A stretch of DNA of 64,000 bases from Eutreptiella sp. 'Long Island Sound 2002' (lineage: Eukaryota; Protista; Euglenida). The DNA is taken from assembly GCA_964036045.1 (NCBI GenBank), contig OZ038379.1, positions 18,104,001-18,168,000 on the forward strand, written 5' to 3'. The notes below the pieces were generated by a model. That model searched no databases, was not told the origin of the DNA, and was given only the letters and a program-made list of their open reading frames with translations. The position numbers and the translations under genes were made by a program. This document shows, piece by piece, positions 371 through 63,534 of this stretch (positions are counted from its first letter, which is position 1; each line of letters begins with the position of its first letter).

Positions 371-387
371 ACTCGCCGGCCACACAC

Positions 388-552
388 CTGCTCCGACTTC
401 TGGGCCGCCTCCTGCAGCCGCGCGATCTCCACCTTCTTCTGCTCCTTCGACTGCTGCAGCGTGGCAATCGTCAGCTCCTGCTGCTTGAGGGCCTCCTTCT
501 TCTTCTCCTTCGACGATGCCAGAGCAATGATCGTGGCGTCCTTCTCTTCGCC
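388..552 (-). CDS. Exon (GEEKDATIIALAS...AQKSEQ); gene continues beyond the window's left end
   Basis: gcggtcgcag|GGC acceptor, CAG|gtgtgt donor; 165 nt, phase 0-0; no stop reached, so further exons are expected downstream. Confidence 0.85.
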
Positions 553-1232
553 CTGCGACCGCAAGCAAACCCCAGTTCGGATGGCCCGGGCGTGCAGATG
601 CTACCTACTCCTACTCTTGTGCGGGAGACCACTTCCAAAGGGGGGGGGGGGGGTTGCCATGAAGGCCGAGTAAGTGCGCGGGGGGTACTTTTGAGAAGAA
701 ATTGTTTACATTGCTTGTCGGAGGGGGACCGTCGTCCCCCTGCTCACAGGTGCTGCTTCTGCCCCGTCCCACGCTGGCGCCGGCATCACACGAAGGATTT
801 CCCAAGACAGTGAAGTTGGGAGCAGACTTTCGGTTGGTGTGCATCCTGTGATGAGAAAACACATAGGGATGCCCTGGGATGCAGGGAAATCATTTTGGAT
901 ACAGTGGGATACATGGGTGACAGTGTATTGCTACGGGGGGGGGGGGGGGCGGCAGGTATGGGTGGTGCACTGGGATACATTGGAATGCGGGGGGCATTGG
1001 GATGCGCGGGAAATTATTTTGGGATGCGCAAGATACACGCAAAACTTTTTCGGATGCCGCTTGGTGAGGCCACTGCTCGCACAGTGTGCTGGCACTCACA
1101 TGGCTTCGGTCCGAATACCCAACAAACCCTTTGAAGGAGGATCCACATTTCACAGGCAGACAGTCACATCCGGGGCTGCATTGCCCGGGTGTCGACCCTG
1201 CGACGCGCACGCGGGCCAGATATGTACGCATA

Positions 1233-1361
1233 CGCGTATACGTATACGCGACGTTGTAGACACTGTGCACATATAAGTTGACCCGAGTATAGTCTGTAGA
1301 CACTGTGCACCACAAATAGACACGGCCTGCTAGTTGTAGACACTGTGCACATGTTGTAGAC
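1233..1361. repeat. 18-bp perfect palindrome followed by a degenerate minisatellite (TGTAGACACTGTGCAC x3 at 40-nt period)
   Basis: cgcgtatacgtatacgcg at 1233-1250; exact 16-mers at 1255, 1295 and 1335; partial TGTAGAC at 1355. Confidence 0.8.
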
Positions 1362-1627
1362 GCGAAGAGACAACATTTGGGAAGGCGGCCGAAGGCCCCC
1401 TTGCCTAAAAAACGGTCCGCTAACGGCGTTTACCCGTGCACAAGGGCATATATTCGCGTTTACACACGTAAACGTACAGCCCTCACGCGGGCAGACGTGT
1501 GGGGGTGCCACTGGGCCGGACGGGGGGTGAAAGAGCAGAGGCGGTATGCGGTACCACAGACCTACCAACACACGCTCATGGCCACGGACACGGGCAGGGA
1601 CACGACACACCACAACCACGGACACAC

Positions 1628-2056
1628 CTGCTGCTGCAGCAGCTGCATCTGCGACTGCTGCATCGCCAGGAACGCCTGCGAATCCGCCAGGTTCTGGTGC
1701 AGCGCCGCCTGCCCGTCGTGCACACTGGCGGCGATGACGGCCACATAGCCCAGCAGGGCATCCTCCGTAACGTGCACGCGGGCGGACATCTCCGCGTCCA
1801 GGAGGTCCTGCCGCTGCTGGTACACGCGCTGCTGCCGCTCCAGCTGCACCTGCACACGCTCGAGCTCTTGCACATGCCGCGCCGTCAGCCGCTCCCGCTC
1901 CGCGGCATGCGACTGCCCCAGCTCCTCCTTCTGCAGCGCATGTCTGGCGGCGAGCTGCTGCAGGTCACGCTGGTGCTGAGCGATCAGCTGCTGCGCCGTG
2001 TCCTCCGCTGCACCTTGGGCCTGTTCGAGGCCCTGCACGCGTTGCTGCAGCGCAAC
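1628..2056 (-). CDS. Exon (VALQQRVQGLEQ...QLLQQQ)
   Basis: gcgctcctcag|GTT acceptor, CAG|gtgtgt donor; 429 nt, phase 0-0; Q/E/A/L heptad pattern. Confidence 0.9.
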
Positions 2057-2655
2057 CTGAGGAGCGCAGGTGGACGGGGGGGTTGAAGGGACGAGACGAG
2101 GCATTGCCTCTACCACCGTCGATCGTAGCTGCCAGGCTCGGCGGCACTTGAGGGCAGGCAATGAGGGAGGGTTCGCGTTGCCCGCACCTGCACAGCAAAT
2201 GGCCATTGAGCCCCACAAAGTGCATTTCTTACCTCAAACCCGCGAATCCCAGGAAGACGCATCGCAAAGCCAGACGAATCCCCCACTTCTGACACGGGGG
2301 ATCACCACAGCTGTCGCCCGCGCGCAGGGCTCGCACAGGGCCCACACTCACCTCAGTGCACCCCACAACCTGCACCGGGTGGACGGGAGAGCAGAAGAGG
2401 ATGGGCTGGTGCAGGCACACAAAGGCCACAGGCGCCGGAGGGTGACAGTCCCGTTACCGGAGGCGGAATCCCCAGCGCCGGAGGGCGACGGTTCCATTGG
2501 CGGGAGACGGGGCAACCAGCCGTTGGTGTGCAACTGCACGTGACGAGGTGCGCGATGCGCCAGCACGCGTGAGGCCTTTCGCCAACGCACAACGGAGGGG
2601 GGGGCAAGAGCGGCACCGGCGCACAGGATCGACAGAGCCGACCGCACGAACGGAC

Positions 2656-2987
2656 CTGCGCCTCATCGGCAGCCGCCAGCAGGGCCTCACGGTCACGAGC
2701 CCCGACGGTCTCCTTCGCGGCCATCTCGTCTCGCAGCGCCCGCAACTGCAGCTCGGCGGCTTCGGCCCGGGCCTGGGCCTGGGACTTGGCGCCGGCCTCG
2801 GCTTCAGCGATTGCCTGCACGTCCTCCATGTCCGACTGCAGGGCCTTGAACATGATGTCCTTTTGGATGCAGGACCGCTGCAGCCCCGTGACCGCAGCCT
2901 GCGAGTCTTGGAGAGTCTCGCACGCCTGCAGGTACTGGTACATGAGCTGCGAGAGCTGCGTGGCCGAGTACTGCAGGCTGTGGATGC
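2656..2987 (-). CDS. Exon (GIHSLQYSATQL...AADEAQ)
   Basis: tgctctttcacag|GC acceptor in phase 1, CAG|gtccgt donor in phase 0; 332 nt. Confidence 0.9.
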
Positions 2988-3442
2988 CTGTGAAAGAGCA
3001 GGGCCAGGGCTGTGAAGCCGCCTAATGTCCAGGCGGGTTGGGTCTTGTGGCATGGGCTGAGTGCGGGGCGCTGCATACGAAAGTGTACACAAGGCTCTGG
3101 CTGCGATACAGTGCCTGAGAACTGGGCGCGCGCCGCGCAGACGGCGGCTTCACCTGCCTTCCTGTGCGGCGCGGTGCGCTATGCCCGTGCGCACTCGCGC
3201 GCCCGCAGGGGCCCGGTGCGCTTGCAGAGGCCCGCGACTGCTGCACACTGCGCGTTGCGTCTGCACCCTCCTCCGGAGAGGCAGGGAAACCCGGAACAAA
3301 GCAGGAGAAGGAGGCGAGGGATACCCCTGCGTCGTGTGTACTCTGTGCCACGTGCTGCACGGGCCTCAATCCATGCTGCAGCAGAATCTTCTGGCACCAT
3401 CCCATGGGACTCGGAGGCTGGATGGGGATGGGGATGGGGATG

Positions 3443-3500
3443 GGGGGTTGCCACAAAGGCTGAGTAAATATGCCGGTTGGTACGTCCGGGCGTGCGCAGT
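3443..3500 (+). repeat. Representative copy of G-run-TTGCCATAAAGG...GCCGGTTGGTAC dispersed element
   Basis: Similar segments near 640-692, 3501-3550, 3617-3667, 5268-5312, 5512-5580, 6332-6387 and 61103-61155. Confidence 0.6.
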
Positions 3501-4707
3501 GGGGGGGGGGGGGGGTTGCAATAAAGATCAAGGACAATGGACCGGTTCACCTGCATCCTGCACTTGTTTGAATTTTGAGGGGGAGGCCCCCGCCCGCACA
3601 AAGCGCGGTCGGTCGACCATCAAAGGTGAGGTCGGTTTGCCAGGTACTTCCGGTACAACGCACTTGGATGTGTTGTGGGGCGGCGTGCCTCCGGGCTGTA
3701 GTCGGCCGATGCTTTGGCGGTGCAGTGCCTCCGCTGCTCGCCGCATGTGGAAGGGGGGGGAAGGGGGGGGGGGGGGATGAGGTTGGGATGTCTGTCACAA
3801 CGCTCCCCCTGCAGCCGTCTGCCCGGGTGTCCCATGCAGGACACCTCGGACAAGCGTTTGTAAGGCGCTTGTTCAGCTTCTTTGATTTGGTTGCAGAGCT
3901 TTTGGGCTCCTCCTGCATAGCTGTAGACGAAAGGGGAGGGGGGGGTTGGCAATGGCGCCTTCGTGGATTGCTGTCTGAAGCTGGCGGCGCCTATTGGCCT
4001 TTCGCCACTGCCTCTTGTCCTTTCCCTCCGTTGGCAGCGGTACCCATTGGCCTCTCACCGCCTAATGCCCTAGATGTACCGGCCATGCCTATCCTTACCT
4101 CCCTGCACTCCTTTCCCTCGGAAGGTGGGTACACGCGTGGGGGGGGGGGGGGTCCGGTAGGCTGGAGGGTGCTATGTCATACAACCCGCGCCCAGGGCCA
4201 GGGGGTTGGTGAGCCGTGCCGGTGGAGTTTGGGGGACGCACCACGGCCCCGCAGGCTAAGGTCCGCGAGGGGCGCAGGACAGACCATAGAGACCAGAAAC
4301 CCTGCAAAGTTGGTGGTACCAATGGGGGATACCGGAAACGGAACCCATGATGATGCTGCCCCCGACCTGCCCGATGCCGCGCCTCCACTTTCGGTTTCTG
4401 CCACCCGCCTACCGGTAAGGCTCCGCCGGGAGTTTGACCGGGCACTGTGCATTGGGTGACTGCACTGTGCCCCCCAGCCCACCCCCTCCCCTTCTGCGGC
4501 CCCTTGAGCAGGCCGTTGCTAGACCACCGCAACTGCCATCCGGGGCATGAGTCCTATTCCTGAGGACCACTCGCCGACACGCTAGCGCACAACCGGGCGT
4601 GTTGCCAACCGTCGGTGCCAGACCCCCGTGTGCGAACCCTCGACCACGGGGTCTTGGGGAGTGTTCGGGGGCCGCGGCTTTACTCCCGGCGCCGGTCGAG
4701 TGGAACC

Positions 4708-4780
4708 TTCGACTCGTGGGATTTGAACCTGGAACCATCGGTACAGGAATCGTGTGCTCTAACATCTCGACCGACCAACG
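4708..4780 (-). other. Degenerate tRNA-derived (SINE-head-like) sequence in an intron
   Basis: Minus strand reads ggtcgagatgttagagca ... ggttcaaatccc with tRNA-like A/B box spacing; stems are imperfect. Confidence 0.45.
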
Positions 4781-4912
4781 TCTCTGGCCGGCAGCCGTCG
4801 GTTGCCGGTAACTGCCCCACTGCCCACTACCCATATCACACCCACCAAACACCCCGGGCCTGCGGGAAAGCGGAGCCCACGTATTCCCCACCAGTTCTCG
4901 CGGCACACATAC

Positions 4913-5179
4913 CAATGTCCTCCTCCTCAACGATGTGCACCCGCGAGAACAGCTCCTGCTGCTCGACATCGCGCAGCCGCACCTCCTGCACCCCCAACAG
5001 CAGTTGCCGGAACTCGAGGCCGTGCTGCTGCCGCAGGTCCTGCAGCTCCTGCTCCAGGGCTGCCACCCGGGCCTCACTGCCGGCGCTCTGCTGCTGCAGG
5101 CGGGCAGCGGCCTGCTGCGCCTCCTGGGCCTCAGACTGGGCGGCCAGCAGCTGCGCCTGCAGCACCGTGCGCTTGACTA
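4913..5179 (-). CDS. Exon (VVKRTVLQAQLLAAQ...VEEEDI)
   Basis: ccgctccag|TA acceptor in phase 1, ATT G|gtatgt donor in phase 1; 267 nt; strong coiled-coil character. Confidence 0.88.
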
Positions 5180-6077
5180 CTGGAGCGGACAGCCGGGCTC
5201 CATTCAGCCCTGTGGCACGAACACATGGGAAGGTCAGACCGGGTCTGCTGCACAAGCTTGGCATTGCGCCTGAGCGAGTAGGCCGGTTGGTACTTCCGGG
5301 TGTACGTACTTGTTCGCCTTTTGCGGAGGGAATCCTCCGCGTGGCTGACCCCAACAGCCGGGGAACAACGGGGAAGGGGGGGGCGGGGGGATGGAGACCC
5401 AATTGCTGGGAGCTAAGCGACGGTGTAGGTGCAGGCCTTCGGTAAATGGACCCGGTTTAACACAGCCACCTACCAAGAGCTACTGGATTGCACCCACTCA
5501 AAGGCTCCCTGGGGGGGAGGGGTCACCATAAAGGCTGGGAAAGTGTGCCGGTTGGTCCTGCCAGGTCCTGCGCACTGGTTTGGGTTTTCAGGAAGGAATT
5601 GTTTGCGTTGCTTGTCCACGCCGCTGGGGAAAGGCGTTTGTGGTGGGTGAGAATGGGACACTTGTCCCTCCACCCACAAATGCTGCTTCTGCCCGTTGGT
5701 GTCCCTTCCACTCAGGCGCCGGCAATGCATCACATTCCATCCACTTGTTTCTTCCCACACCTTGGGTCTGCCCGAGTGGGGGCCATGGTCTCGTTCAAAC
5801 ACTGCTCAAACTACGAAGTTCATAACAATTGCGGCAAACCGGTTGTTCCGGTTCGAATGCCCTGCTGCTGGGCTCAATAATCAAATGGCCCCTTCTTGAT
5901 CACATCCCTGGCCTCTGGCCTCCTCCCACTCACTACTTACTGAAGAGGTTCAGGACAACACGTGCCATGGACGTGGAGGAGGGGCCGGGGGGGGGGGGGG
6001 ATGGAGGTGAGGGGAAGGCTCCGTGCGTCGGGGAAGAGGCGCGGCGAAGCCAAAACGCAAACCGCACGCCCACGCAC

Positions 6078-6255
6078 CTGCAATGAGCAGATTGTGGCTG
6101 TGCAGCAGGTGTACACGCTCCAGCATCTCCTCGTGCACCAGGGCGTAGCACTGCTGGTCATGCTGCCGCATGGACTCCATTGAGGCATACACCGCCCCCA
6201 GCTCGTCTTGATATGCAGACTGCACCTCTGCCAACTCCGCCGACAGCTGCATGGC
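6078..6255 (-). CDS. Exon (AMQLSAELAEVQSAY...HNLLIA)
   Basis: ctacag|GCC acceptor (an alternative in-frame AG would start the exon at 6276), GCA G|gtgcgt donor in phase 1; carries the degenerate motif. Confidence 0.8.
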
Positions 6256-6823
6256 CTGTAGCAGTGCGTAGATGGGCTGTAGAGACATGGGGGGTTTTCC
6301 GTACAGGCCGGGCGGGGGGGGGCGGGGCTGAACCATCAAAGATGGAGGAGGTTTGCCGGTTGGGACTTCGGACTTCGCGCACTTGGCTGTGCTTTGTGGA
6401 GGCGTGGCCTCCGGGCACGTCACGAAAGGGAAATCACCCCCGAACCCCACAAACAAGTTCGGCTTTCCACGACCCCAATCCCCGCCTTCGTCGGACCCGG
6501 TGGTGTGAAGGGCACTTCTTTGCCCCAACTGCACGACTTCCCACACACACACACACCAGGGGCCCTCATATGGCAATGCCGGGGGACGCCGGAGGAGGCG
6601 AGGGTATCTAACTGACCAGCGCACGAAGCAGGGCAGAGGGTGCAGGGCATGGGCCACAGGGCCCAGACGGGGGAAGACATGGCGCAACTCCGTCGTACAG
6701 AAGCGTCAGTTGTTCAGCGACCGCGTTCGGCGAAACGCCAGCCTCCGGGGGCTGACTGCCAACCCGAGGGGGTGTTTGACGGGCGAGGTATGGCTGAGGA
6801 CAACAGCAGCAACAAAACGAGAC

Positions 6824-7413: not shown

Positions 7414-9581
7414 CTGCGGGACAACGGACAGCGTTGGAGTGCATTGCGGATGCCCGGCCAACTGGATGATGGGGAGGAGCGCCATCCACAAAGGCATGGG
7501 GGAAGACCGGCACCAATGAAGGTCCAAGTCAGGTCAGACTACACCAGAAGGACAGTGGGTGGAGCCAGTGGGGGGGGGGGGGGGGGGCTTTCACAGCAAA
7601 AAACCAAACTGCCTCCCGGTTTGGCGGTCTACAGGCTGGCGGCCAATCGACGGCGGTTGTCGGGCAACCGATGCCAGACGGCGGTCAACCCGACGGTCTA
7701 CAAGGTGCAGGGGGGAGGGGGAGGGGGGGGGGTCCTTCAGCAACGTCAAAGAGGAAAGGAAACAAAGAAAGGGCCCTAAAGCCCCCTCCCCCCTGCCTGG
7801 AACCTCCGGAAGGCGGGCCTTGGTGACAAAACCATGCACCAGGAGCTTCTGCCCGAGTTGCAGGGACTGAGCCATTCCAGTCCCTAAACAATAGACTCTC
7901 AAAGCAACTGCTTTGACGGGGCCAGGCCTTTGCTGACTGGGGAGGCAGGGCGTTGCTTGAGCAGGGTGCGGGGGGGGGGGGGGTCCAAGGGGGAGCCCCG
8001 GCTGCTGGAGCACACCATCTCCTGAAGAAATCGCAGGTGGTACCATAATGCGCTGGGCCGGATTGCTAGAATGTTGCAACAAGTGAATTGCAACTCATCC
8101 TTCCAAGTCCGTTCACAGTTACCTCACCTGACCAATATGCAACACAAACATGAAAGAGGGATGGATGCTTCTTGTCACTGATAACTGTGTACTTGAAACG
8201 GTGTCCTTTGCAACCTTTTTGACACTGCCTAGCCAGTGTAGTCTCTGGTCTTTGCGGGATGGATGGTTCCTGGACGACCTTGGTTTTCTTCGGTGTGTTT
8301 TTTGGTTTATGAAAAGTCAGCAACTTTCTGTGCTTCATTGTCTGCCACCTCTTTATCTCATCCTGGAACCAGAAATACCGGGGGCGGGGGATTTTGAACG
8401 GGCATCATTTCGCCGGGGAACAGTTAGAGGCCCAACTGCCTCACGTACACCCTACTGTGCCCTGCCCTGTCGACACAAGTAAAATTTCGCCAGGCGCCAT
8501 TTCACCACCTTACTTACAGACGGAATTTTACCACGAAATTATCCCCGCCTGAAATCCCCCCCTCGTACAGGATCATGTCGACCACGTCTTCACATTTCGC
8601 GTGTGGGGGAGCCCAAGAACGCACTTTCCCGGCACTCATGATATCTGCATGTTTGCTGCAACACAAAATACAGGAGGCACAGACGGAGTGACCGTTCAAT
8701 TCCTCTTCACGTGGGCCGAAGATGCGGCAGAAAACCCTTCTGGCGGCTGGCGAAAACAGTCCCCTGAACTCTGTTTCTTTACCTTTTTCAGATTTAGAGC
8801 ATGCGGAGGGGGGGGGGGGGTCCAGGTGGAGGGATCCCCTGTGAAATTCCCCGTTGAACTCTGAGCAGTTTGACTGCACATCGGGGGGCAAAAGATTGTT
8901 GACCACTGACCATTGGCGAAAAGAAACACGAAATTCTGGCAGCCACAACACCAAACCTCCGAAAGCACCCAACGAGCCGACCCGATGTTCCTGGCGCCCA
9001 TGGGAGTAGATTTGGGGGTCTCAAGGGAGGCAGGGAGTCCAAGTCTATACTTGGACGCCTCTGTGCCCTTGTGCATCAAAAACGTGCTTTGTTGGGTATC
9101 ACAGGCCCCGTATTCCCCGTTCCCTGGCTCGCTCTCTCGCTCTCTCGCTCTCTGCCTCTGACTCTCTCTGTCGTCGCTGCCCCTTCCCACCCACCCTCTT
9201 GCTAAATCCGTGAGAAACATCCCATCCCACGCCAACCCTTCTCAAAGAAGATGTGCAACCCTGAGAAGGGGCAAGGGGTCATGGCACCACCATCGGCAAA
9301 TGGGACGCACGCATAGCGACAGCAGCAGTAATCCCCTGTGGCAGAGGTGAGGGATCGCTCTGGTTTCCCGGTTTGTATAATGTATTCCTGAGGTTCGCAA
9401 ATCTGAGGCAGGAAGTGCACCCTCTGAGGCCAGAGGCCCTTTGCTTTGCACATGTGATCATTGCGCCTGTCGCCCGCGGGCAGGACAATGTGCGACGCAC
9501 GCAAGGCCTCCAACATGTCTCCCTACCCACAGTTCCCCACCCCCCGAAGGCCAAACGCCCCACGCCCCCAGTCACACGCAC

Positions 9582-12500
9582 CTGCGCGAGTTCCGCATGC
9601 ACGCCAAGCGTCTCCGCATCGACCTTGGAGCACGCAGCCATGATCGCCAGCACGTCCTCGCGCTCCCACAGCCCCAGCCCTACCCGGACCATGAGCTCCT
9701 CCTCCTGCAGGGCCCACACGTGCTGCTCGTTCAGCTCCTGCGACTCAAACGCGGACGCCAGCGCCTCCAGCTCGCGGCCGTACAGCGTGCGCACCGCATC
9801 CACCTCCAGCCCCGGGTCCATCACGGGCCGGGCCCAGCCCGCACTGGCGACCCCCGCGGTGCCGGCAAGCGCCGCGGCCGCGATACCGACCGCCTCGAGG
9901 TGCTGCTCGGCGGCGAGCCCCGCACGCTGCAGCAGCGCGTCCTCAAGCAGGGCCCAGCGCTCCCGAGAAGGGGCGCCCAGGGGGCTAATGCCTGAGGCCT
10001 GCCGTGACAGCGGGGGCGTCATGGGGGAGCGCGGGCGCACGCCAAACTCCTCGTGTACCCGGTCCAGCTCCGTCATGTACATGTCGTAGGCCACCGCCAG
10101 CTCCTCCTGCAGTGACTCGTGCTGCTGGATGGCGTGCCATGCGGCAGCGCTGTGAAGCTGACCGGCAAGATCCAGAAGCGCCGTGCAGGCATCCTGCTCA
10201 AGGGCCGACCGCCACGTGGCCTCGTTGTACGCAACACGCAGAATATCGCACTGCGCAACGAGGGCCCGCAGCCTGCATTGACCTGTGGTGAGCTGCGTGG
10301 GAATGGCGCGAAGATCCTGCAAAACGCGTTCCCCGTCCGCCAAGAAAACAGCAGGGGCATCGAGGGAAGAAGGATCAAGAGAGGGGTGTTGAGCAGTGAG
10401 AGACGTGTGCAAGTGATTAAAAAGAGCTCGCACCCGATCCAGCTCGTCACGCTGCTCAGCATCGACCACCGCATGGTACTCACCCAGCTCCACACTGCTT
10501 CCCCTCTGGATCTCAAGCAAATCCAAATACTGCTCTTCGAGGATCCTGCAACGCGCAGTCCCTTCCTCCTCAAGCAGCAACAGCTCCACCACCTGCTGCT
10601 CCTTCGCTTGCAGCGACTCCGCAGCTGCACCCGCATCCTCTGAATGCGCAACCATCACCGCCTGTAGGCCACGGACCGCATCCACATGCTCGGTGTACTC
10701 GGCCTCCAGGATTTGCTGTCGCAATGCACGCTCCTCCGCAGCTAAGTCATTCAGCTCAAGCCTCTCCTCAAGCTCAGCAACTCTCTGCCGCATATGCGCG
10801 GTCTCTTGCTCCCACTCCGCATGCTGTCGGTCCTTGTCGGCCAGCTGCATCCGTACCTCCGAGTACTGGCTTTGTTGTGATTGCAGTGTCCCTTGTAGAC
10901 TCAACAGTTGCTGCCGCAGCATGGCCTCCGTCATCACGCCAGACGCCATCGTCACATCAAAGAAGTCGCTGCTCTCCGACTCCTCAATCTGCAGCCGCTC
11001 GCTGAGTTCACTGTTCCTCACGTCCCACAACTGCCGCTCCTGCGCAAGATTGGCGGCTGCCGCATCCAATTGTGCAGAAGCAAGCTCAACAGCCTGTTGA
11101 TAGTCGGTGGATGCAGCCGACAACGCACTCCGCAGGCCAGACATGTTGCCCAACAGCCAGCTGTCAGACGCTGCAATCAGGTCAATCACCTCGCTGTGTT
11201 CATCTTCCATCAGCTGTTGCCGTCCTGCAAGCTCTGTGGATGTCAGGTCACTCAGCAGCTTGGCATATCCAATCACGTCAACCCCATCCTGAATCTGCGT
11301 CTTCTCCAAGTCCAGATTGCAGTTTTCTGCAATCACATCTGCAAGCATAGTTTCCTTCTCAACCAGCAGTGACTCGAACGTACTGCCCCGTTGAGCTTGG
11401 GCTGCAGTATGCGTCTCGAAGGCCTCAAACTGCAATGACACCCTTGCCTCAGCTTCAGCCCTCTCCAGCATCAAGATCTCCTCCTGCTGCGATGCACGAG
11501 CAGATGCTGCAGCCGCTTCCTCAGTGAGTTCAACAACGCGCTTTTCTGATGCAGCTGCTGCCGCACTCACTTCAACAACGCGCTGCTGTACCTCGGCAAA
11601 TTCCATTTGCGTTTGCTGAAGCTTCACTGACAGCGACGCTACATCTGCCTCACTCGAACCGCTGTCTTCAACCGCATGCCCATCCAGTGCAGCTGACTCT
11701 GTACCCTGCTGCAGGGCACACGTCACACCCTCGTGATGCCATACGCCCAGCTTCTCCATAATGCTGCAGTACTCGTCTTGCACCATCGCCAAGCGGCTTC
11801 CAATCTCTGCATATTCCGCATCCATCTTGGTCTTTTCCTCGCCAGCCTGCAGAAGCCGCTGCTCAAGCTCTTCTAGCTTGAATGCTGCACTCACACGCAC
11901 ATCGTCCTTGTCCTGTATTTCCTCCTGCAGTCGAGCTGCACTATCACGTTGGGCATCCACAACCTCCTGCAGCCTGTTGAACAGGGCTTCTTGATCCTGC
12001 AAAGCACGCTGGTAATCAACAAGCTGCTGATCACGCAGCTCCGCCTGCCTCGCATGCTCCGAAACCGCTGCACTATGCTGAAGTGTCACCCATTCCATGC
12101 CCAAACCATGTCGGCATCGGTACTCCTCAGCGATCAACTCGCCCCGCTGCAGCGTCTCCTGCAGCTCCGTTTCAGATGCAGCGTGTTGCGCTCGCACCCG
12201 ATCCAGCTCGTCGCGCTGCTCAGCATCGACCACCGCATGGTACTCACCCAGCTCCACACTGCTTCCCCTCTGGATCTCAAGCAAATCCAAATACTGCTCT
12301 TCGAGGATCCTGCAACGCGCAGTCCCTTCCTCCTCAAGCAGCAACAGCTCCACCACCTGCTGCTCCTTCGCTTGCAGCGACTCCGCAGCTGCACCCGCAT
12401 CCTCTGAATGCGCAACCATCACCGCCTGTAGGCCACGGACCGCATCCACATGCTCGGTGTACTCGGCCTCCAGGATTTGCTGTCGCAATGCACGCTCCTC

Positions 12501-51500: not shown

Positions 51501-54500
51501 TCCTCGATCACTGTGCATTGCACGAGTCAAAGCTCTGTGTATTGTGCTGAAGGCATCCGCAGTACCAGCCCCCTCAGATCCCCATATATTAAGACGGCTG
51601 CTCGCCTCAGATTCTTGGAAGCGCATCCAGTGTTCTTGAAGTGTCCGGGTCGCTTCAAACGCATGTCCCAGCTCTTCAATCTCCTCCTGATACACTGCAG
51701 ACCCTGCTTGCATCTGGGCTTGTGCCTCCAGCAGCTGCACGTCTGCTTGCACAGCGTGCTGCTGCAAAGCTGAGTGTAGCTGACCAGCAATGCTGATCAA
51801 CTCTCCTCCCTCTTCCTGGATCACCTGCATCCTTTCCTGTAGGTTTTGGTGTTCCAGGTCCAGCTGTTGAGCGATGCCCTGCCTCTCCTTTCCCGTTTCT
51901 TGTTCTTCTTGCAACTTCTGAATGGTGCTGTCCCTCTCCTGTAAATCATGCTGCATCTCATTCCACGCCTTCTGCGCTTGCTCCGCCTCTCGTTGCGCAT
52001 CACGTAAAGCCGTGTTCCGCCCCCCGAGCTCCTGTTGCAGGTCTGCTAGAGCCCGGTATGAGGCTGCGGCATGCCTTTGATGCTGCGAAAGCATGGTTGC
52101 AGCAATGCCAACCCTTGCGTTGGACTCCTGTGCCTGTACCCAAGCTCGTCCAGAGATTTCCCCTCCCACAATATCGAACACATTCATAGCTTGCCGCTGC
52201 TGCATTTGCGTCGATGGTGCCGCTGACCCTTCACCCACTGGTATTCTTTCCTGTTCAAACACCCGTAACTTCTGCAACATGTCAGTGTTCTCCTCTCGTG
52301 CTCGGATCAACTCTACTTCAGTTGCGGCCAGCGTGTCTCGGAGGCTTTGAAGCGTGTCCTCCAGCCCACGGACTTGCCTGTTCCGCTCTTCAACATCGCC
52401 AACCAGTGTCTGGTTTGCATGCTGCAGCTGATCAACCAGGGCCATATTCCTGATTCCAACCGTTGCCAGTAGGGCTTGGGCTTCAAGCTCTGCCAGGGCC
52501 GCCCGGTCCTGACTCTCACTGAGCTGCAGTTGCACGCATTGCTGCTCAAACGCCTTGGATGCCTCAACGGCACTTCCAAGCTCCTCAACCTCCATGCAGT
52601 ACATCGCAGACAGCTCGTTGTACTGCAACGTCACGCCGCTCAGCATTTGAAGCGAGATGGCAGACAAACGCCTGCTCTCCTCCTCAATGATCTGCATGCG
52701 TTCAGTCAGTTCCCTCTGCATTAGCACCCAGTCCATTTCCTCCCGAGCAGCTGACAAACTGCTTTCCTGCTGCGTCACTATACCTCCTTCCTCTAACCGC
52801 CCTCCTGTCGTGGAAACTCGGCTCGTACCCCGTGACCGGGTGGCCAGATTCAAAGCATCCGGCTGTTCCTGCTGCATGATCCCCATCCTTGCACTGAGCT
52901 CCGCATTTCTCAGCATCAGAGACGCCTTATCTTGCTGCAGTCCTGCAATCTGTCCCCGCAACCCCGTGTTGACTGCCTGGACATCCCTCAGCTGCGTCTC
53001 AACGTCGACTGTCATTTGCTGTTGCCCTGCCAGCTGCTGCTGCAGGGCCGCTTGCACTTCAGCAATCTGTCCTCGATCACTGTGCATTGCACGAGTCAAA
53101 GCTCTGTGTATTGTGCTGAAGGCATCCGCAGTACCAGCCCCCTCAGATCCCCATATATTAAGACGGTTGCTCGCCTCAGATTCTTGGAAGCGCATCCAGT
53201 GTTCTTGAAGTGTCCGGGTCGCTTCAAACGCATGTCCCAGCTCTTCAATCTCCTCCTGATACACTGCAGACCCTGCTTGCATCTGGGCTTGTGCCTCCAG
53301 CAGCTGCACGTCTGCTCGCACAGCGTGCTGCTGCAAAGCTGAGTGTAGCTGACCAGCAATGCTGATCAACTCTCCTCCCTCTTCCTGGATCACCTGCATC
53401 CTTTCCTGTAGGTTTTGGTGTTCCAGGTCCAGCTGTTGAGCGATGCCCTGCCTCTCCTTTCCCGTTTCTTGTTCTTCTTGCAACTTCTGAATGGTGCTGT
53501 CCCTCTCCTGTAAATCATGCTGCATCTCATTCCACGCCTTCTGCGCTTGCTCCGCCTCTCGTTGCGCATCACGTAAAGCCGTGTTCCGCCCCCCGAGCTC
53601 CTGTTGCACGTCTGCTAGAGCCCGGTACGAGGCTGCGGCATGCCTTTGATGCTGCGAAAGCATGGTTGCAGCAATGCCAACCCTTGCGTTGGACTCCTGT
53701 GCCTGTACCCAAGCTCGTCCAGAGATTTCCCCTCCCACAATATCGAACACATTCATAGCTTGCCGCTGCTGCATTTGCGTCGTTGGTGCCGCTGACCCTT
53801 CACCCACTGGTATTCTTTCCTGTTCAAACACCCGTAACTTCTGCAACATGTCAGTGTTCTCCTCTCGTGCTCGGATCAACTCTACTTCAGTTGCGGCCAG
53901 CGTGTCTCGGAGGCTTTGAAGCGTGTCCTCCAGCCCACGGACTTGCCTGTTCCGCTCTTCAACATCGCCAACCAGTGTCTGGTTTGCATGCTGCAGCTGA
54001 TCAACCAGGGCCATATTCCTGATTCCAACCGTTGCCAGTAGGGCTTGGGCTTCAAGCTCTGCCAGGGCCGCCCGGTCCTGACTCTCACTGAGCTGCAGTT
54101 GCACGCATTGCTGCTCAAACGCCTTGGATGCCTCAACGGCACTTCCAAGCTCCTCAACCTCCATGCAGTACATCGCAGACAGCTCGTTGTACTGCAACGT
54201 CACGCCGCTCAGCATTTGAAGCGAGATGGCAGACAAACGCCTGCTCTCCTCCTCAATGATCTGCATGCGTTCAGTCAGTTCCCTCTGCATTAGCACCCAG
54301 TCCATTTCCTCCCGAGCAGCTGACAAACTGCTTTCCTGCTGCGTCACTATACCTCCTTCCTCTAACCGCCCTCCTGTCGTGGAAACTCGGCTCGTACCCC
54401 GTGACCGGGTGGCCAGATTCAAAGCATCCGGCTGTTCCTGCTGCATGATCCCCATCCTTGCACTGAGCTCCGCATTTCTCAGCATCAGAGACGCCTTATC

Positions 54501-56456
54501 TTGCTGCAGTCCTGCAATCTGTCCCCGCAACCCCGTGTTGACTGCCTGGACATCCCTCAGCTGCGTCTCAACGTCGACTGTCATTTGCTGTTGCCCTGCC
54601 AGCTGCTGCTGCAGGGCCGCTTGCACTTCAGCAATCTGTCCTCGATCACTGTGCATTGCACGAGTCAAAGCTCTGTGTATTGTGCTGAAGGCATCCGCAG
54701 TACCAGCCCCCTCAGATCCCCATATATTAAGACGGCTGCTCGCCTCAGATTCTTGGAAGCGCATCCAGTGTTCTTGAAGTGTCCGGGTCGCTTCAAACGC
54801 ATGTCCCAGCTCTTCAATCTCCTCCTGATACACTGCAGACCCTGCTTGCATCTGGGCTTGTGCCTCCAGCAGCTGCACGTCTGCTCGCACAGCGTGCTGC
54901 TGCAAAGCTGAGTGTAGCTGACCAGCAATGCTGATCAACTCTCCTCCCTCTTCCTGGATCACCTGCATCCTTTCCTGTAGGTTTTGGTGTTCCAGGTCCA
55001 GCTGTTGAGCGATGCCCTGCCTCTCCTTTCCCGTTTCTTGTTCTTCTTGCAACTTCTGAATGGTGCTGTCCCTCTCCTGTAAATCATGCTGCATCTCATT
55101 CCACGCCTTCTGCGCTTGCTCCGCCTCTCGTTGCGCATCACGTAAAGCCGTGTTCCGCCCCCCGAGCTCCTGTTGCAGGTCTGCTAGAGCCCGGTACGAG
55201 GCTGCGGCATGCCTTTGATGCTGCGAAAGCATGGTTGCAGCAATGCCAACCCTTGCGTTGGACTCCTGTGCCTGTACCCAAGCTCGTCCAGAGATTTCCC
55301 CTCCCACAATATCGAACACATTCATAGCTTGCCGCTGCTGCATTTGCGTCGATGGTGCCGCTGACCCTTCACCCACTGGTATTCTTTCCTGTTCAAACAC
55401 CCGTAACTTCTGCAACATGTCAGTGTTCTCCTCTCGTGCTCGGATCAACTCTACTTCAGTTGCGGCCAGCGTGTCTCGGAGGCTTTGAAGCGTGTCCTCC
55501 AGCCCACGGACTTGCCTGTTCAAGCCCTGAATGGACTTGTCTCGGCCTTCGACCTCACTTTGAAGGGCTGTCACCTGGGCCTCGGAGCCGTCCAAGGTTG
55601 TTCCCAGCAGCGCACACTTCTGCAGCAGCTGGCCCTCGGACTCCCGCACGTTCCCCAGGTCCCTGATATGCTCGTTGATTCTCCTCTGCTTCTCCTGCAC
55701 CTCCAAAGTCCTCTGCGCCACTGTACCATGCAGCTGCGCCACCTCCCCTTGCACTGCCGCGTGCTGCGCAGAGGCAGCGGACAGGTCACTTTCCAGTGCG
55801 CCCACCGCCGAGCGCAGCTCCTGCAGTTCTTTGCTGAGCATCGAGGTCACCTGCGAGTGCCCTGCACGCCCTAAGTGCACGATCTGGTCGTGCATGTCAT
55901 GGAACGCCTGCAGCCGCCCTTTGGCCTCCATCTCCATGATCTCTTCCCGGTCCGCCTGTAACGCCTTGTTCCGCTCCCAGAGCGCCCCCATCTGCTCCAT
56001 CTGCAGCGAAAGCCGCACACACGCCTGGTCCCTGTCCTCCAGCAGCTTTTGCGCCTCCTCGGACACCAGGCGCTGCTGGGCCAGCGCCTTCTCCAGCTCC
56101 CGCATCTGCTGCTGCGTCTCCGCAGCCACAACCGCCACCCCCGCAGACTGCAACGGGCCAGTGGTCCCGGACTGGGCACATCGCGTCACCAGAGATCCCC
56201 AGTCCTCGAAAGCCTCCTCCGCGATACTCAGGCGTTGTGACATTTCGGTCACCAGCAGCGCCGGGCTGACTGCCGCATATACATCCGCGCGGCCCGCACC
56301 ATTCGCCAGCAAGGCGGCGGTGTACACATGGTGCATGTCAGACACGGTGACGCTGCGGTGCCGGGACTGAGACGCGTCTCCCTTTTGCGGTACCAGCCCC
56401 TTCGGGGGCGCGCCTGCAGATCTTGGGGCCCCTGGTCCAGACGGCGGAGGGATCAC
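9582..56456 (-). CDS. Giant 46,875-nt coding exon (15,625 aa) of a repetitive coiled-coil protein
   Basis: Lies inside the stop-free ORF 9279..56486. cgttctcatcgcag|GTG ATC acceptor at 56456 and GCG CAG|gtgcgt donor at 9582; length divisible by 3, phase 0-0, matching both neighbouring exons. Coiled-coil composition stops abruptly at the predicted donor. Confidence 0.92.
10426..47933 (-). repeat. Coding tandem array B: 26 full units plus 1 truncated unit of 1,278 nt (426 aa, short) or 1,764 nt (588 aa, long)
   Basis: Marker atgcccaaaccatg recurs at 47626, 45862, then every 1,278 nt down to 27970, then at 26713, 24949, 23692, 21928, 20650, 18886, 16690, 15625, 13861 and 12097. Confidence 0.95.
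48229..55520 (-). repeat. Coding tandem array A: about 4.6 copies of a 1,569-nt (523-aa) unit
   Basis: Identical shadow ORFs recur at 48389, 49958, 51527, 53096 and 54665 (exact 1,569 spacing); only a few substitutions are visible between copies (PST/PTT, ADL/ADV, VRA/VQA, SSR/SNR). Confidence 0.95.
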
Positions 56457-58001
56457 CTGCGATGAGAACGACGTGTACCTGAGCAAGCCCCTTTTTTAGC
56501 GACGGGGGCGGGGGGTTGGGGGGGGCATGTCCTGGAGGGCGGGCAATTTTTGAGGGCAGGCACTGCCTATGTCCTACCGGGGCCGAATGGGGGTCCAGCC
56601 CATGTGGCAGGCACCCACTGACCATGATACAGAGGGGCCAACCTCCATATCTGATATACAATGACCAACAGGTGACTTGTAGTTCGGACAGCCAAAAAAT
56701 CCTGACCACTGTTAGCCTACCCGCTACCCCTCCCTGCGTGGGGGGGGGGGGGGGGTTCTGGAGGAAGCACCAACCGTTTGAAAAAAACGCAAGCATTCCC
56801 CCGCGGCTATGGGACACCGATGCGTGCGCACGAACATGTTCCGCGAGGCACAAGAGATGTGATGCAAAGAAAAGTCCAAGAGGGCTAGATGGCTACATAA
56901 CCCCAACAGTTTGGGGGGTTCCCAATGCTTCAGAGCGAGGGACAAACTTAAAGGTGGCCCACACGCCGGCCCGGTGGCCACATAACCCCTACCGCCTGGG
57001 GGGTCCCCAAAACTGGTTCTGATGTTGCGCATTGCAACACCGCTAGTTCAAGTACGTGAATAGAACCCTTCACACGGAAAGCCCGCATACCCTCGCTACC
57101 AGTGGATGTCTTTGAAGATATGTCTTGTAAATTGGATGTAGTGGAACTATCTCAACTGGAGGACCTAGAAGCGGTGGTGGCACTGCCATTGGAAACAGAT
57201 CCCCAACCCCTAGATCAGCTTGTGTCATCGCGGAAACCTTCTGGATCAGGAACTTCATATGGGTGACGCTCTAGACACCACTTCTTCGTTGCAGCAAGCA
57301 ATCCACCATAGGATACCTTGTTCAATCAGTTGTGGTGCCTCTTGCACAAGAGGGGATCTTCAGTGACATGCCATGGGCGCGTTTCATGAAAAACAACTAC
57401 ACACTCAGAGAGCCCCCCCCCCCCCCTTGGGGCATCCAATCCACGAAACGCTCAGCGAGATCCCTATTTCAGGCAAGACATAGCTTATGGCAAAGCAATG
57501 ATCCTTCTAAACAGGCTTGCAACGCATGCACACATGCCTGTGGCGCTTGCGCATGTGCACACTAACACAGAGAGCTCAATAGCATCAGGGCTGAACCTTT
57601 TGATCAGCGAAGGCCAGGCAGTAAGAATCCAAACGAAATTATGTATCTGGCCCGGTCTCTGGCCCATAATCCGGTCTAGGCCCATACACGAGCAGTGCTC
57701 TCAGCGAGGAGCCATATGCCGGCATATGCGTGCACACACACATGCAAACCTGCACACACATATCCATCTCTTCCCGATCCAAATAATGCGCAGGGACTAC
57801 TCCACATGCCTACGCTGCCGCACGCAACGCCCAATGGAACCTCTACTTTTGCGGAAGCATGAGCGCCCTTTTGGCACACGCGGGGCTGGCACGACCATGT
57901 GCCACACCCTCACTGAGCGCCCACAATCCCATGCCGACCCAGTCCCCTTTCCCCACCACATCATGAGCAGAGCCGAGGTTGGAAACTGTCTGACACAATA
58001 C

Positions 58002-58381
58002 CTGCCCCTGCCCCTGCAGCTGGTCCAAGAGTTCAAAGCGGCCCTCCACCTCCGCCGTCATCAGCGCAATGCGGTCCTCCACCTCGGCCTCCAACACCTC
58101 CTGCTGCTGCCGATCCTGCAGCCGCATCCACTCCACCATACTCCCTACCTCGTGGATCTCCCCACTATATAGCGCCTGCAGTGCCTGCAGGTCGGCCACC
58201 TTCCCTAACACCTCGTCCTCCTTCGCGTCAAGTGCACGCCGCGCGGCGGCCAGCTCGGACTGCAGTGTGCGCATCTGCTGGTGGGCCTCATGTATGGCCT
58301 CAGTTGCGAGGGCAACGAAGTCCTGGTGCTCAGATTGCACCAGCCCCCACCGTCGCTGTGTCTCCTCCAGAGGCGTGCCTT
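58002..58381 (-). CDS. Exon of giant coiled-coil protein gene (EGTPLEETQRRW...LQGQGQ)
   Basis: ctctcttcatcttgcag|AA acceptor (phase 1), CAG|gtattg donor (phase 0); 380 nt; E/Q/A/L-rich heptad-like sequence. Confidence 0.9.
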
Positions 58382-62026: not shown

Positions 62027-62096
62027 TTGGGCTGGGAATCGAACCCGTGGCGACACATCAACAATTTTGTGCCTTTGACCGCTCAAGTACGGGAGC
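62027..62096 (-). other. Degenerate tRNA-derived (SINE-head-like) sequence in an intron
   Basis: Minus strand reads gtacttgagcggtcaaaggc (A-box/D-arm-like) ... gggttcgattccc (B-box); acceptor and anticodon stems do not pair properly. Confidence 0.45.
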
Positions 62097-62392
62097 ACGC
62101 CCTGGTGGTTGGTGGTTAAACGAAGAAATATGGTTGGAAACTGCCGGAGAATATCGCTGCCTTGGTGCAGTCCTGCAGAGCCGTGCTGAGTAAAAACCCC
62201 AAAACAGCAACAGGCCTAGCGGGGGCTCGGGGGCTCCCTGACGACAGTCCATAAGAGGAGGGCATAGCAGAGCATGCGGTGGTCCTTGGAAATGCGTCAT
62301 ACGAGACGATTGTCGGGAGAAGGCGCCCAGCAGCTGGGGGGGCCAGGGGGGGGAGGGCTGCATCGTTGAGATCTCAGCAGGCGGAAACTGAC

Positions 62393-62612
62393 CTGGGGTT
62401 CCCTCGGTTGCAGACAAAGCCACCGGGTAGCTGCGGCGGTCCAACGCCATGGCACCGAGTAGCTCTACGGCAGCGGTGGCCTGCTGCGACAAGATGAGCA
62501 TGCGGCTCTGAGCCTCGGTGTCCATGAGCTGGTATCGTGCAGAGTCCTGCAGTTGGACATACTCCATCAATGTACTCAGATCCTCCAGCTCTGTGTCGTA
62601 CACCTTGTGCAC
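62393..62612 (-). CDS. Exon of giant coiled-coil protein gene (VHKVYDTELEDL...ATEGTP)
   Basis: gtgttgcag|GTG acceptor, CCA G|gtcagt donor; 220 nt, ends in phase 1, which matches the phase-1 start of the next exon; carries the Y..EL/E...R degenerate motif seen in other exons. Confidence 0.85.
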
Positions 62613-63130
62613 CTGCAACACAAAGCGCGGTGGCAATGGCCACTGCCTGACATGCCCCAGCCTGAACACCACGAAAGTCCGCTTTACACTTGTTCTGGTT
62701 GGCTCCCTTGGCAGCGGCCTATCACACACAGCGACCATGGCCGGTCCAGGACCCTGCACCTGTGAAGCACAGCCGACTCTGGGGTCGGCCCCCTCGGCCC
62801 CATCCCCAGCCTTCCCGCATAACACCCAGTGTCCTCTGTCCGCCCGGAGTGCTGCTTTGTGGCCCCCGCTCCTGTCCCTGCCAAGGGCAACGCCTGCCCC
62901 CGCCCCTGCCCCCGCGGCCCCAAGAGATGCCCCTGATGGTGCTAGAATGAGCAGTCGCAAGGCCAAGCCCGTGACTTTCAGGACCTTCCCGTAAAACAGA
63001 ACAGGTCGTGCCCCATTACTTTGCCGTCATCACCTGGTGCCACTCCCTTTCAGTGGGCCCAAAGGAACCGAAAGAAAAGTCACATGCGAAGCCACTGCCA
63101 TTGTAGCATCGAACACCCTGAGACAGCTGT

Positions 63131-63185
63131 CAACAACCGTCAACCGGTCATCGGTTGACCACCAGCTGTCGGCGGTTGGCGGTCA
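63131..63185. repeat. AACCGCC/GGCGGTT-rich dispersed repeat copy
   Basis: caacaaccgtcaaccggtcatcggttgaccaccagctgtcggcggttggcggt, closely similar to 268-320. Confidence 0.7.
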
Positions 63186-63438
63186 AGCTTCCGTAATTAG
63201 AGCTGCCGCAATGGTTTGCAACCCACGTGTTGTGCGTGGGGATCGCAAATTGCAATTGCTTTTTTGCCCAACCATCACACGTGACACTGGATGGTGACAG
63301 GAACAGGCCCTTTCAGGGAAAAGGACGTTTGGCTTCTTACGGCCGATTGAAAGTGAAGGGCACAGGGGAGCGGTGGGAGACTGGCTTTGTCAACAGCCGG
63401 CACGTGGGGTGGGCACAAGCAGCAGTGAGGAGACACAC

Positions 63439-63534
63439 CTCCTCTGTGTCTTCATGTCTGGTCGAGTCTACTGCGTTTTGATTCGCTCTTTGGTAGGTGG
63501 TCACGGTAGTTGCTAGAAACTCCAAGAGCTCCGC
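63439..63534 (-). CDS. Exon of giant coiled-coil protein gene (AELLEFLATT...HEDTEE)
   Basis: atgcag|GCG acceptor, GAG|gtgtgt donor; 96 nt, phase 0-0; helical-looking peptide. Confidence 0.72.

Follow-up and report, generated by a model that had tools for sequence, protein, structure and literature searches.

Exon structure of the locus

The window, a 64-kb stretch of DNA, carries a single minus-strand open reading frame at positions 9279..56486, in which 15,735 codons are read without a stop according to the list of its open reading frames. Judging from the base composition of the strand, stops are expected in 4.3% of codons; the probability of encountering none in approximately 2,100 non-redundant codons is about 1e-40, a value computed on the non-redundant length and not on all 15,735 codons of the frame. 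The splice model built from the sequence joins nine minus-strand exons in phase (48,993 nt, 16,331 codons), contains neither a start nor a stop codon and is open at both ends of the window. All 16 splice borders are canonical GT-AG with agreeing phases; the acceptors are pyrimidine-rich and end in CAG/ (the slash marks the exon border), and the donors include /GTGTGT, /GTGCGT and /GTATGT. The original prediction had joined ten exons into 16,339 codons: the in-phase joining and the open ends stand, while the count is reduced to nine exons and, trivially, by eight codons. Its outer limits, 388 and 63534, are exactly the donor of the last exon and the acceptor of the first.

The gene enters the window through exon U3 (63439..63534; 32 codons, phase 0), which lies between acceptor CCCCATGCAG and donor /GTGTGT. 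Exon U2 (62393..62612; 220 nt, phase 0 in and 1 out), with acceptor TTGTGTTGCAG and donor CCAG/GTCAGT, contains a copy of a recurrent motif described below (EAQSRMLIL), as does the heptad-rich exon U1 (58002..58381; 380 nt, phase 1 in and 0 out; EVEDRIALM), bordered by TCATCTTGCAG and CAG/GTATTG. The giant exon (9582..56456; 46,875 nt, 15,625 codons) is contained within the 15,735-codon frame, between acceptor TTCTCATCGCAG at 56457 and donor GCGCAG/GTGCGT at 9581. Further along the minus strand lie exon D1 (6078..6276; 199 nt; acceptor CTCTACAG, donor TTGCAG/GTGCG; motif EMLERVHLL), exon D2 (4913..5209; 297 nt, phase 1 in and out; GTGCCACAG, ATTG/GTATGT; motif ELFSRVHIV), exon D3 (2656..2987; 332 nt; CTTTCACAG, GCGCAG/GTCCGT) and exon D4 (1628..2056; 143 codons, phase 0; GCTCCTCAG, CAGCAG/GTGTGT). 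The gene leaves the window through exon D5 (388..552; 55 codons; acceptor GGTCGCAG, donor GAGCAG/GTGTGT), the sole lysine-rich piece of the protein (pI 8.2).

It is the matching phases and splice sites that place all exons in one putative transcript. A second assembly (ENA ERZ25074135), taken to represent the same or a near-identical genome, shows in its contigs L006 and L008 that the gene goes on downstream of the window, by an estimated 3,000 codons or so. The giant size proposed earlier was thus correct in kind and, by this estimate, understated.

Repeat arrays in the giant exon

The giant exon consists of near-perfect central repeats between unique helical ends, all read on the minus strand. 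Its unique head (55589..56456; about 290 aa) contains no internal repeat in tile BLAST and displays a strong heptad pattern. Array A (48087..55588) follows, in which a 523-aa (1,569-nt) unit is repeated about 4.8 times with 99.75–99.94% DNA identity. Array B (10287..48086) comprises 27 units of the 426/588-aa type, with DNA identities of 95–100%. Seventeen of them are short (426 aa), and 15 of these stand side by side; the others are long forms (581 or 588 aa) that carry a 162-aa insert, single units of 732 and 355 aa, and one partial unit. The unit variants form an ordered, non-random series. The unique tail (9582..10286; about 235 aa) has two copies of the motif and weaker heptads. Autocorrelation peaks at an offset of 426 with 99% identity over aa 3300–9300, which bears out the 426-aa unit of the original prediction; this unit accounts for some 80% of the protein. 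Downstream of the window, the second assembly reveals an exon of 1,949 codons with the same architecture, made of 229-aa units that are older and more diverged and still keep the motif.

Composition, predicted fold and a recurrent motif

The 15,735-codon frame is dominated by E (13.4%), A (12.8%), L (11.8%), Q (11.0%) and R (7.1%), in agreement with the composition first noted, and holds little K (1.3%) or P (0.3%). Summed exon by exon, the product encoded in the window has a mass of 1.83 MDa, close to the initial figure of about 1.8 MDa, and a pI of 4.5; the giant exon contributes 1.75 MDa at pI 4.46. Scans with Pfam, for transmembrane-like stretches (maximum KD19 1.57) and for the Walker A motif returned nothing, consistent with the first reading, in which no motor, ATPase, Ig or transmembrane motif was seen. 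Predicted to be helical, poor in proline and free of Pfam domains, the protein shows these features of long coiled-coil proteins.

Structure prediction on single units supports an almost entirely alpha-helical product. AlphaFold2 assigns 95% helix to unit B, in six helices, and 90% to unit A, in five helices of 81–101 residues; across both units the predicted helices are 50–105 residues long, with short breaks between them at fixed places. Confidence in the tertiary models is low (pLDDT 62 and 55, pTM about 0.3). At the start of the open frame, over 330 codons that include the head, 42% lie in strong heptad windows (4% in shuffled sequences); for the head and unit A the share of residues is 42–44% (4–5% shuffled), and four of the five unit A helices reach or approach significance for the heptad signal. 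In the short B unit the coverage is 23% against 6% in shuffled sequences, and only two of the six helices are significant. No myosin-like charge periodicity was detected. The earlier description of the protein as largely coiled coil is borne out only in part, clearly in the head and the 523-aa unit and less so in the main unit. A rod-like shape seems plausible from these predictions, and the length of 2.3 μm proposed for the giant exon is to be read as an upper bound and not an estimate, because heptads are found in only two of the six main-unit helices.

All unit types and most of the small exons share a motif of approximately 20 residues, E-x3-R-h-x-h-h-[E/D]-E-E-x3-h-h. A profile of the motif built from the downstream exon matches units A and B, the tail, and exons U1, U2, D1 and D2 at about 5–20 bits (10.7 bits for U2, 19.7 bits for D1), whereas shuffled controls reach 0.6 bits at most. 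Its retention across otherwise diverged modules makes it possible that this acidic motif is a new protein-docking element, which would be previously undescribed.

Integrity of the gene

What the window contains is probably the middle of a single nuclear gene, intact and interrupted by introns, that encodes a real, lineage-specific giant fibrous scaffold protein. The reality of the gene is argued by the open frame (P about 1e-40), the 16 canonical borders, the frame-keeping units and the recurrence of the motif. All six unit lengths (426, 523, 581, 588, 732 and 355 aa) maintain the reading frame. The 17 short B units differ by 26 synonymous and 38 non-synonymous variant codons, compared with a neutral ratio of about 1:2.7, and contain zero stops and zero frameshifts; dN/dS among units is roughly 0.5–0.6, moderately below 1, which is modest evidence of selection. 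Dispersed copies of the B unit elsewhere in the genome, amounting to 11.6 kb, have accumulated 14 frameshifting indels and 8 stops, so that 22 disabling lesions in these copies contrast with none in the 46.9 kb of the giant exon.

The open frame could be due in part to the youth of the arrays (95–100% identity) and to gene conversion. Taken further, this would mean a very young runaway tandem amplification within a more modest coiled-coil gene; the array would be silent or tolerated, full-length protein would be scarce or absent, and the frame would have survived only through recency and homogenization. The near-identity of the units at the DNA level (99.8–99.9% in array A), the only moderate reduction of dN/dS, the spread and decay of B-unit pieces through the genome and the unequal unit number in the two assemblies are all compatible with such an event, and so are the transcript data. 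No Euglena RNA run holding a 6-kb test stretch of the locus was found in a sequencing-run search, no transcript-derived protein is present among the protein-search matches, and the exon patterns have no match in two metagenome scans. One RNA-library contig, from an estuary metatranscriptome, contains a 1,179-nt piece of the B unit; the same metatranscriptome contains the intronic transposons at a ratio to the B unit about as in DNA, and the contig is for this reason not separable from DNA carry-over. We nevertheless consider the amplification scenario unlikely, since the frame is kept in three unit families as well as in every unit length, the lesions are confined to the dispersed copies, and the older 229-aa units of the downstream exon retain the motif.

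Contig L006 of the second assembly is identical to positions 1–12942 of the window but for one homopolymer length, and an exact match of an open reading frame over exon D3 links the two assemblies. The call of the same frame in the second assembly is 16,248 aa long, 513 aa longer than in the window, and the unit count is therefore not fixed; the surplus equals exactly one 523-aa unit if the start is a GTG at codon 11. Near-identical units of 1.3–1.8 kb might be mis-assembled, the repeat arrays of trypanosome FAZ10 are often mis-sized in assemblies (PMC5358337), and exon continuity is deduced here from phase and splice sites. It is nonetheless improbable that the array is an inflated or collapsed artefact, or that the exons derive from two or more adjacent paralogous genes: in both assemblies the frame runs uninterrupted for about 16,000 aa, the unit variants are arranged in order, and the junctions of neighbouring exons are all phase-matched without an in-frame stop. 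Read depth of the B unit in DNA run X4 is 35–50 times single-copy, at least the 27 assembled copies plus the dispersed fragments, which together match it.

Relatives and comparable proteins

To find relatives of the putative scaffold protein, we searched it in pieces. Neither Pfam nor NCBIfam has a family that reaches its cutoff in any piece of the protein, and Foldseek, queried with a low-confidence model, finds no match in the PDB at E ≤ 0.001. Queried with the A and B units and the junction between them, exhaustive phmmer searches of 1.84 billion representative proteins recovered only three fragments, all of them decayed and located on ERZ25074135 contigs; the unique tail has no relative by word search. 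The units thus match no characterized family, and the label of an uncharacterized protein holds, with no family, solved structure or homologue outside of the second assembly in any of these searches.

Several types of giant or coiled-coil proteins were considered by comparison. The head of the giant exon weakly resembles the coiled-coil arms of SMC/Rad50 proteins in NCBIfam (E 1e-8, 32–34 bits), as expected because canonical heptad sequences give such matches; the NCBIfam scores of 18–34 bits compare with cutoffs of 300–1087, and no ATPase head, Walker A motif or hinge is present, which rejects this assignment. Titin, obscurin and nebulin are of comparable size class and share the idea of a length set by module number, but consist of Ig, Fn3 or nebulin modules, which the protein lacks. 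A modular giant of the spectrin, plakin or titin type is likewise rejected, since no piece of the protein matches a spectrin, plectin, Ig or Fn3 module in Pfam at E ≤ 0.01. The giant spasmin/centrin-binding proteins of Spirostomum are protist-specific giant repeat proteins that scaffold contractile meshes, and exemplify identical repeats used as periodic docking sites; the motif found here, by contrast, is acidic, not basic or aromatic, and no Pfam family reaches its cutoff (PMC9946354).

The closest counterparts in design are found among the trypanosomatids, as proposed originally by analogy with their giant repetitive proteins: the use of near-identical units is shared (PMC5358337, PMC3313915). 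FAZ10 contains 52 nearly identical repeats and migrates at about 2 MDa; together with ClpGM6 and Ps3500 of Phytomonas it belongs to the cytoskeletal proteins of megadalton size that this phylum builds from repeats, which have coiled-coil regions and variable repeat numbers that are under-assembled in genomes (PMC5358337). These proteins differ in their 35-aa repeats (FAZ10) or calpain-like domains (ClpGM6), against units of 229–588 aa here, and were demonstrated on gels and by microscopy, whereas the present protein is predicted from its gene. Membership of the FAZ10/ClpGM6 group, with its 35-aa or 68-aa repeats, is rejected on these unit lengths, and no calpain or other Pfam match and no homologue among 1.84 billion proteins was found. 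Euglena is not known to have a flagellum attachment zone.

NUP-1 of Trypanosoma brucei, a lamin-like protein of the nucleoskeleton, has 17 near-perfect 144-aa repeats, exceeds 400 kDa and is thought to be extended over about 400 nm (PMC3313915). Like the present protein, it is a large, acidic, almost wholly helical or coiled-coil protein of Euglenozoa with near-perfect central tandem repeats between unique ends, and its repeats are homogenized within species and unrecognizable between species, which we count as a further likeness (PMC3313915). Unlike NUP-1, the protein described here has a mass of at least 1.83 MDa in the window, three unit families of 229–588 aa, and a gene with introns. Orthology is rejected, as no similarity is detectable by the phmmer and tail searches. 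Euglena lacks all known lamina proteins, including lamins, plant NMCPs and NUP-1/2, the latter absent from E. gracilis (PMC6366073), and a functional analogue of NUP-1 might be sought in a protein of this design: it would line the nuclear envelope as a peripheral lattice that anchors the permanently condensed chromosomes, the missing nucleoskeleton of Euglena. Such a role, by analogy, is very improbable, as no similarity extends outside of the second assembly, the true N- and C-termini lie outside of the window, and flagellar, pellicular or basal-body fibres fit the same design. If true, a lamina would have arisen independently for the third time in a single phylum.

Possible mode of action

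Returning to the giant scaffold protein as the favoured reading, its chains might pair where they bear heptads, giving a long rod, segmented and flexible, or a bundle of such rods, that would form or cross-link a fibre of the cytoskeleton or nucleoskeleton. With the acidic motif displayed on each identical unit, docking sites would recur periodically along the rod, spaced by ≤63–87 nm if fully extended. Length would be set by the number of units, and this number would be altered by unequal crossing-over. The mode of action would then resemble that of the giant repetitive structural proteins of trypanosomes, without sequence kinship to any of them.

If expressed, the protein is among the largest predicted in protists: its mass of at least 1.83 MDa in the window would exceed 2.1 MDa by estimate with the downstream exons, and at an estimated 19,000 codons or more it would rank among the largest proteins outside of animal muscle. 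Euglena has several fibrous systems of which few proteins are known (pellicle strip bridges, flagellar roots, the canal/reservoir collar and the nuclear periphery), and an orphan scaffold of giant size is a concrete candidate component of one such system. Near-identical units, changeable in number by unequal crossing-over, would make the protein a natural case for testing whether a cell structure takes its size from the number of repeats. Both expansion microscopy (PMC11806349) and Cas9 RNP editing (PMC13142649) exist for Euglena. Should the gene not be expressed, the locus remains a clear example of repeats amplified in frame by a runaway process.

Open frame and exon structure

The ORF listing of the window contains a minus-strand frame running from 56486 to 9279 that comprises 15,735 codons and zero stops. 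Stops would be expected at 4.3% of codons from the base composition of the strand, and the probability of such a frame staying open is ~1e-40 when just its ~2,100 non-redundant codons are counted. The product is dominated by E (13.4%), A (12.8%), L (11.8%) and Q (11.0%), with K (1.3%) and P (0.3%) scarce. Exons were placed by reading the minus-strand flanks for coding-looking stretches between canonical splice sites. The giant exon (56456-9582; 46,875 nt, 15,625 codons), which an intron of 1,545 nt separates from U1 and one of 3,305 nt from D1, is preceded by three small exons, U3 (63534-63439, 96 nt), U2 (62612-62393, 220 nt) and U1 (58381-58002, 380 nt), and followed by five, D1 (6276-6078, 199 nt), D2 (5209-4913, 297 nt), D3 (2987-2656, 332 nt), D4 (2056-1628, 429 nt) and D5 (552-388, 165 nt), all on the minus strand. 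All 16 exon borders are GT-AG in good context and the phases agree throughout. The nine exons sum to 48,993 nt, or 16,331 codons, with both start and stop absent, and encode 1.83 MDa within the window; exons were searched one by one, and lengths and masses are per-exon sums. The giant exon product has a pI of 4.46 and a net charge of approximately -1,600. The frame and its canonical, in-phase borders bear out the giant open multi-exon gene of the original prediction, whose ends, at 388 and 63534, coincide exactly with the D5 donor and the U3 acceptor. Its claim of exons joining in phase without start or stop also stands, with the exon number corrected from ten to nine and the length from 16,339 codons to eight fewer.

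Antisense to the B repeat units of the giant exon, the plus strand has a series of ten ORFs at 33082-46821, each 319-380 aa long, beginning with ATG and following one another at intervals of 1,278 nt. They look like mirror ORFs rather than separate genes, of the kind expected when TTA, CTA and TCA are avoided in the sense frame.

Repeat architecture

Tandem Repeats Finder reported no repeats because of its period limit of 500, and the repeat structure was derived from autocorrelation and tile-against-self BLAST, with positions given as codons counted from 56486. The giant exon starts with a unique head of ~300 aa, followed by array A (aa 300-2800; ~4.8 copies of a 523-aa unit), array B (aa 2800-15400; 27 copies of a second unit) and a unique tail of ~235 aa. 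DNA identity is 99.75-99.94% among the A units and 95.3-100% among the B short units. This 426-aa short form accounts for 17 of the 27 B units, 15 of them contiguous; the remainder comprise a long form (581 or 588 aa) with a 162-aa insert and three single units, of which one is partial and the other two have 732 and 355 aa. The B variants fall into ordered blocks, a 1,007-aa higher-order pair among them, an arrangement that stepwise unequal crossing-over would be expected to produce.

Evidence for coding and selection

There are six unit lengths, every one a multiple of three. Variant codons among the B short units comprise 26 synonymous and 38 non-synonymous cases with no stops or frameshifts, where random change on the same sequence would give a ratio of ~1:2.7 and 4.8% stops, which suggests modest purifying selection. 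Decayed B-unit fragments, 91-98% identical and dispersed over other contigs (L001-L005) of a second, near-identical assembly, ENA ERZ25074135, which was taken to represent the same genome, serve as an internal control: in no more than 11.6 kb of sequence they have accumulated 14 frameshifting indels and 8 stops.

A short acidic module recurs along the protein. Its profile, built solely from a downstream exon beyond the window, matches three times per A unit, once per B unit and twice in the tail, as well as in exons U2, U1, D1 and D2, with scores of ~5-20 bits versus at most 0.6 bits for shuffled sequence. The motif approximates E-x3-R-h-x-h-h-[E/D]-E-E-x3-h-h, as in TELAVRQQLMEDEHSEVIDLIA (a B-unit copy) and AELLERVQLLEEEHAEVLDVI. 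That a single motif is kept while the modules around it have diverged is hard to explain without protein-level selection. Several lines of sequence evidence thus indicate that the giant frame is real coding sequence. With the near-identity of the A and B units on one side and the open frame and the retained motif on the other, it is unlikely that the locus represents a young, silent runaway amplification.

Expression is the weakest part of the case. The run search returned no Euglena RNA run containing the test stretch, and three of the four runs compared are DNA, because a unique intron is covered in them like exon. In the estuary metatranscriptome X1, the B unit is represented by a contig of 1,179 nt that differs at one position over 375 nt (10426-10800 of the window), and intronic transposons occur at approximately the DNA ratio; single-copy parts of the locus are absent from this library. 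This contig cannot be told from DNA carry-over. Two further estuary metatranscriptomes, X2 and X3, have the same small word share as X1 (0.05). At least X1 therefore contains the source Euglena, its DNA, or a very close relative. A spliced contig was also sought in two metagenome scans, using patterns drawn from exon D4 and the final part of the giant exon, with 0 matches.

Array size and extent of the gene

An exact-product look-up with the ORF over exon D3 located the locus in ERZ25074135, on contig ctg10635_40x_l, whose DNA equals that of the window at 1-12942 bar the length of one intronic C-run at ~3500. The giant frame in this assembly (L006:1-3664) is called as 16,248 aa, 513 aa longer than in the window. 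By arithmetic, the excess would be exactly one extra 523-aa A unit if the call began at a GTG at codon 11; the length difference may stem from haplotype or strain, or from how each assembly resolved the repeat count. In the DNA run X4, over 4801-10800, single-copy depth is 8-12 and B-unit depth 360-490, corresponding to 35-50 copies. This depth is accounted for by the 27 array copies and by dispersed fragments equivalent to ~9 more units. It follows that the array is not inflated, although its exact count carries an uncertainty of one unit or more.

The gene was followed downstream on the same contig through its stretches L006, L007 and L008. Beyond the D5 donor, a phase-0 exon starts at L008:1837, followed by an exon of 1,949 codons (L008:3118-8964) composed of 229-aa units with four motif copies each; the borders of these two exons were checked, and both have canonical sites and phase 0. 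The motif regex matches the 1,949-codon exon 24 times versus 0.5 expected. At least four further coding stretches extend to L008:16560, the last of which ends at a donor, and the stop codon therefore lies further downstream. We estimate that ~19,300 codons are visible in total, the gene being open at both ends. The possible extra A unit notwithstanding, the depth agreement and the in-phase borders leave a mis-sized array, or more than one gene, as a quite improbable account of the locus.

Protein class and predicted structure

Across all pieces searched, every Pfam and NCBIfam family stays below its cutoff; for the head, NCBIfam shows only a weak, sub-threshold likeness to SMC/Rad50 coiled-coil arms. 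Pfam calls of Asp_decarbox, DUF7334 and Herpeto_peptide on a downstream 2,053-aa ORF were rejected as summed weak repeats in which no single stretch passes. The in-window protein contains no transmembrane-like stretch and no Walker A motif, and a PDB sequence search found no match. Searched exhaustively by phmmer against a set of 1.84 billion representative proteins, a 1,200-aa query (unit A, the junction and a long unit B) gave three matches, all of them short fragments on ERZ25074135 contigs. Word searches, for which the queries were the tail, unit B and the first 3,400 aa, returned nothing beyond fragments from this assembly. A word search for other giants with a 10,000-aa query found none, which says little, as it also missed the protein's own 16,248-aa counterpart. 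ESM Atlas look-alikes were generic coiled-coil leads at ≤0.84, or none, and were set aside. By sequence, the protein is an orphan, and its description as uncharacterized holds, with zero relatives by Pfam, NCBIfam, PDB and phmmer.

AlphaFold2 without alignment models the B short unit as 95% helix, in six helices of 32-106 residues (pLDDT 62), and unit A as 90% helix, in five helices of 81-101 residues (pLDDT 55); pTM is ~0.3 for both, and the models do not set helix packing. Foldseek with the B-unit model against PDB found no match, a result without weight at this pLDDT. In a heptad test, the coiled-coil signal is clear in the head and in unit A, but in the B short unit only two helices of six show it. 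Charge periodicity of the myosin or intermediate-filament kind (28-residue or similar) was rejected, no peak exceeding the 95% level of shuffles. There is thus good support for a giant, helical protein and partial support for one that is "largely coiled coil". The proposed length of 2.3 um (0.15 nm per residue) survives as an upper bound for a fully extended rod, not as an estimate, since back-folded helical bundles would make the rod several-fold shorter.

We conclude that the giant gene is real and that the interpretation originally placed on it is partly supported: the gene is probably intact and lineage-specific, and its product probably a giant fibrous scaffold protein. Such a protein would build a segmented helical rod, pair via its heptad segments and display an acidic docking motif periodically, with unit number tuning rod length. 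Proteins of the sister lineage share this design, namely NUP-1, with 17 near-perfect 144-aa repeats and ~400 nm (PMC3313915), and FAZ10, ClpGM6 and Ps3500, of 0.5-3.5 MDa (PMC5358337), but have no sequence relationship to the giant protein, which may therefore work like them while standing outside their families. The predicted likeness to trypanosome giant repeat proteins accordingly extends to design and not to sequence kinship. The reported absence of lamins, NMCPs and NUP-1/2 alike from E. gracilis (PMC6366073) makes a specific nucleoskeletal role attractive; we rate that role as highly improbable.

Introns and dispersed fragments

CA-rich simple repeats occur in introns at 63560-63760 and 58950-59160 of the window and at L008:9328-9650, and translate to T/H/P runs, e.g. 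(TTPHH)n just past the 1,949-codon exon. Intron repeats at 5201-6000 and 7401-8000 reach a depth of 1,000-4,100 in X4, versus 8-12 for single-copy sequence, which corresponds to a few hundred copies in the genome, and probably represent transposon fragments. Contig breaks are frequent at 7568-7589, adjoining G-rich loose ends. Origin from a giant endogenous virus was dropped, the locus having ordinary spliceosomal introns full of host transposons and no viral domain.

The dispersed B fragments, with their frameshifts and stops, lie at L001:1137-2575 and 8131-11686, L002:9314-11799, L003:8374-10824, L004:1-1057 and 10085-10728, and L005:9951-10112, the two copies in L004 being ~9.7 kb apart. 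A single 3' breakpoint is common to the fragments of L002, L003 and L004, which points to one capture followed by duplication. We rejected them as retrocopies, which would prove transcription: poly(A) and exon junctions are absent, they contain B sequence alone, and the breakpoint is shared. They were copied as DNA. Between the two B fragments of L001, the interval 3245-7752 consists of gene pieces in a mosaic: parts of PEPCK_GTP follow one another, three successive calls among them measuring 51 aa each, and an RNase H call lies close by. In L002, the 5' flank of the B fragment (9214-9313) ends in the acceptor-like ttttgtccttcag, followed by in-frame-looking sequence, and this fragment may be exonised in another gene.
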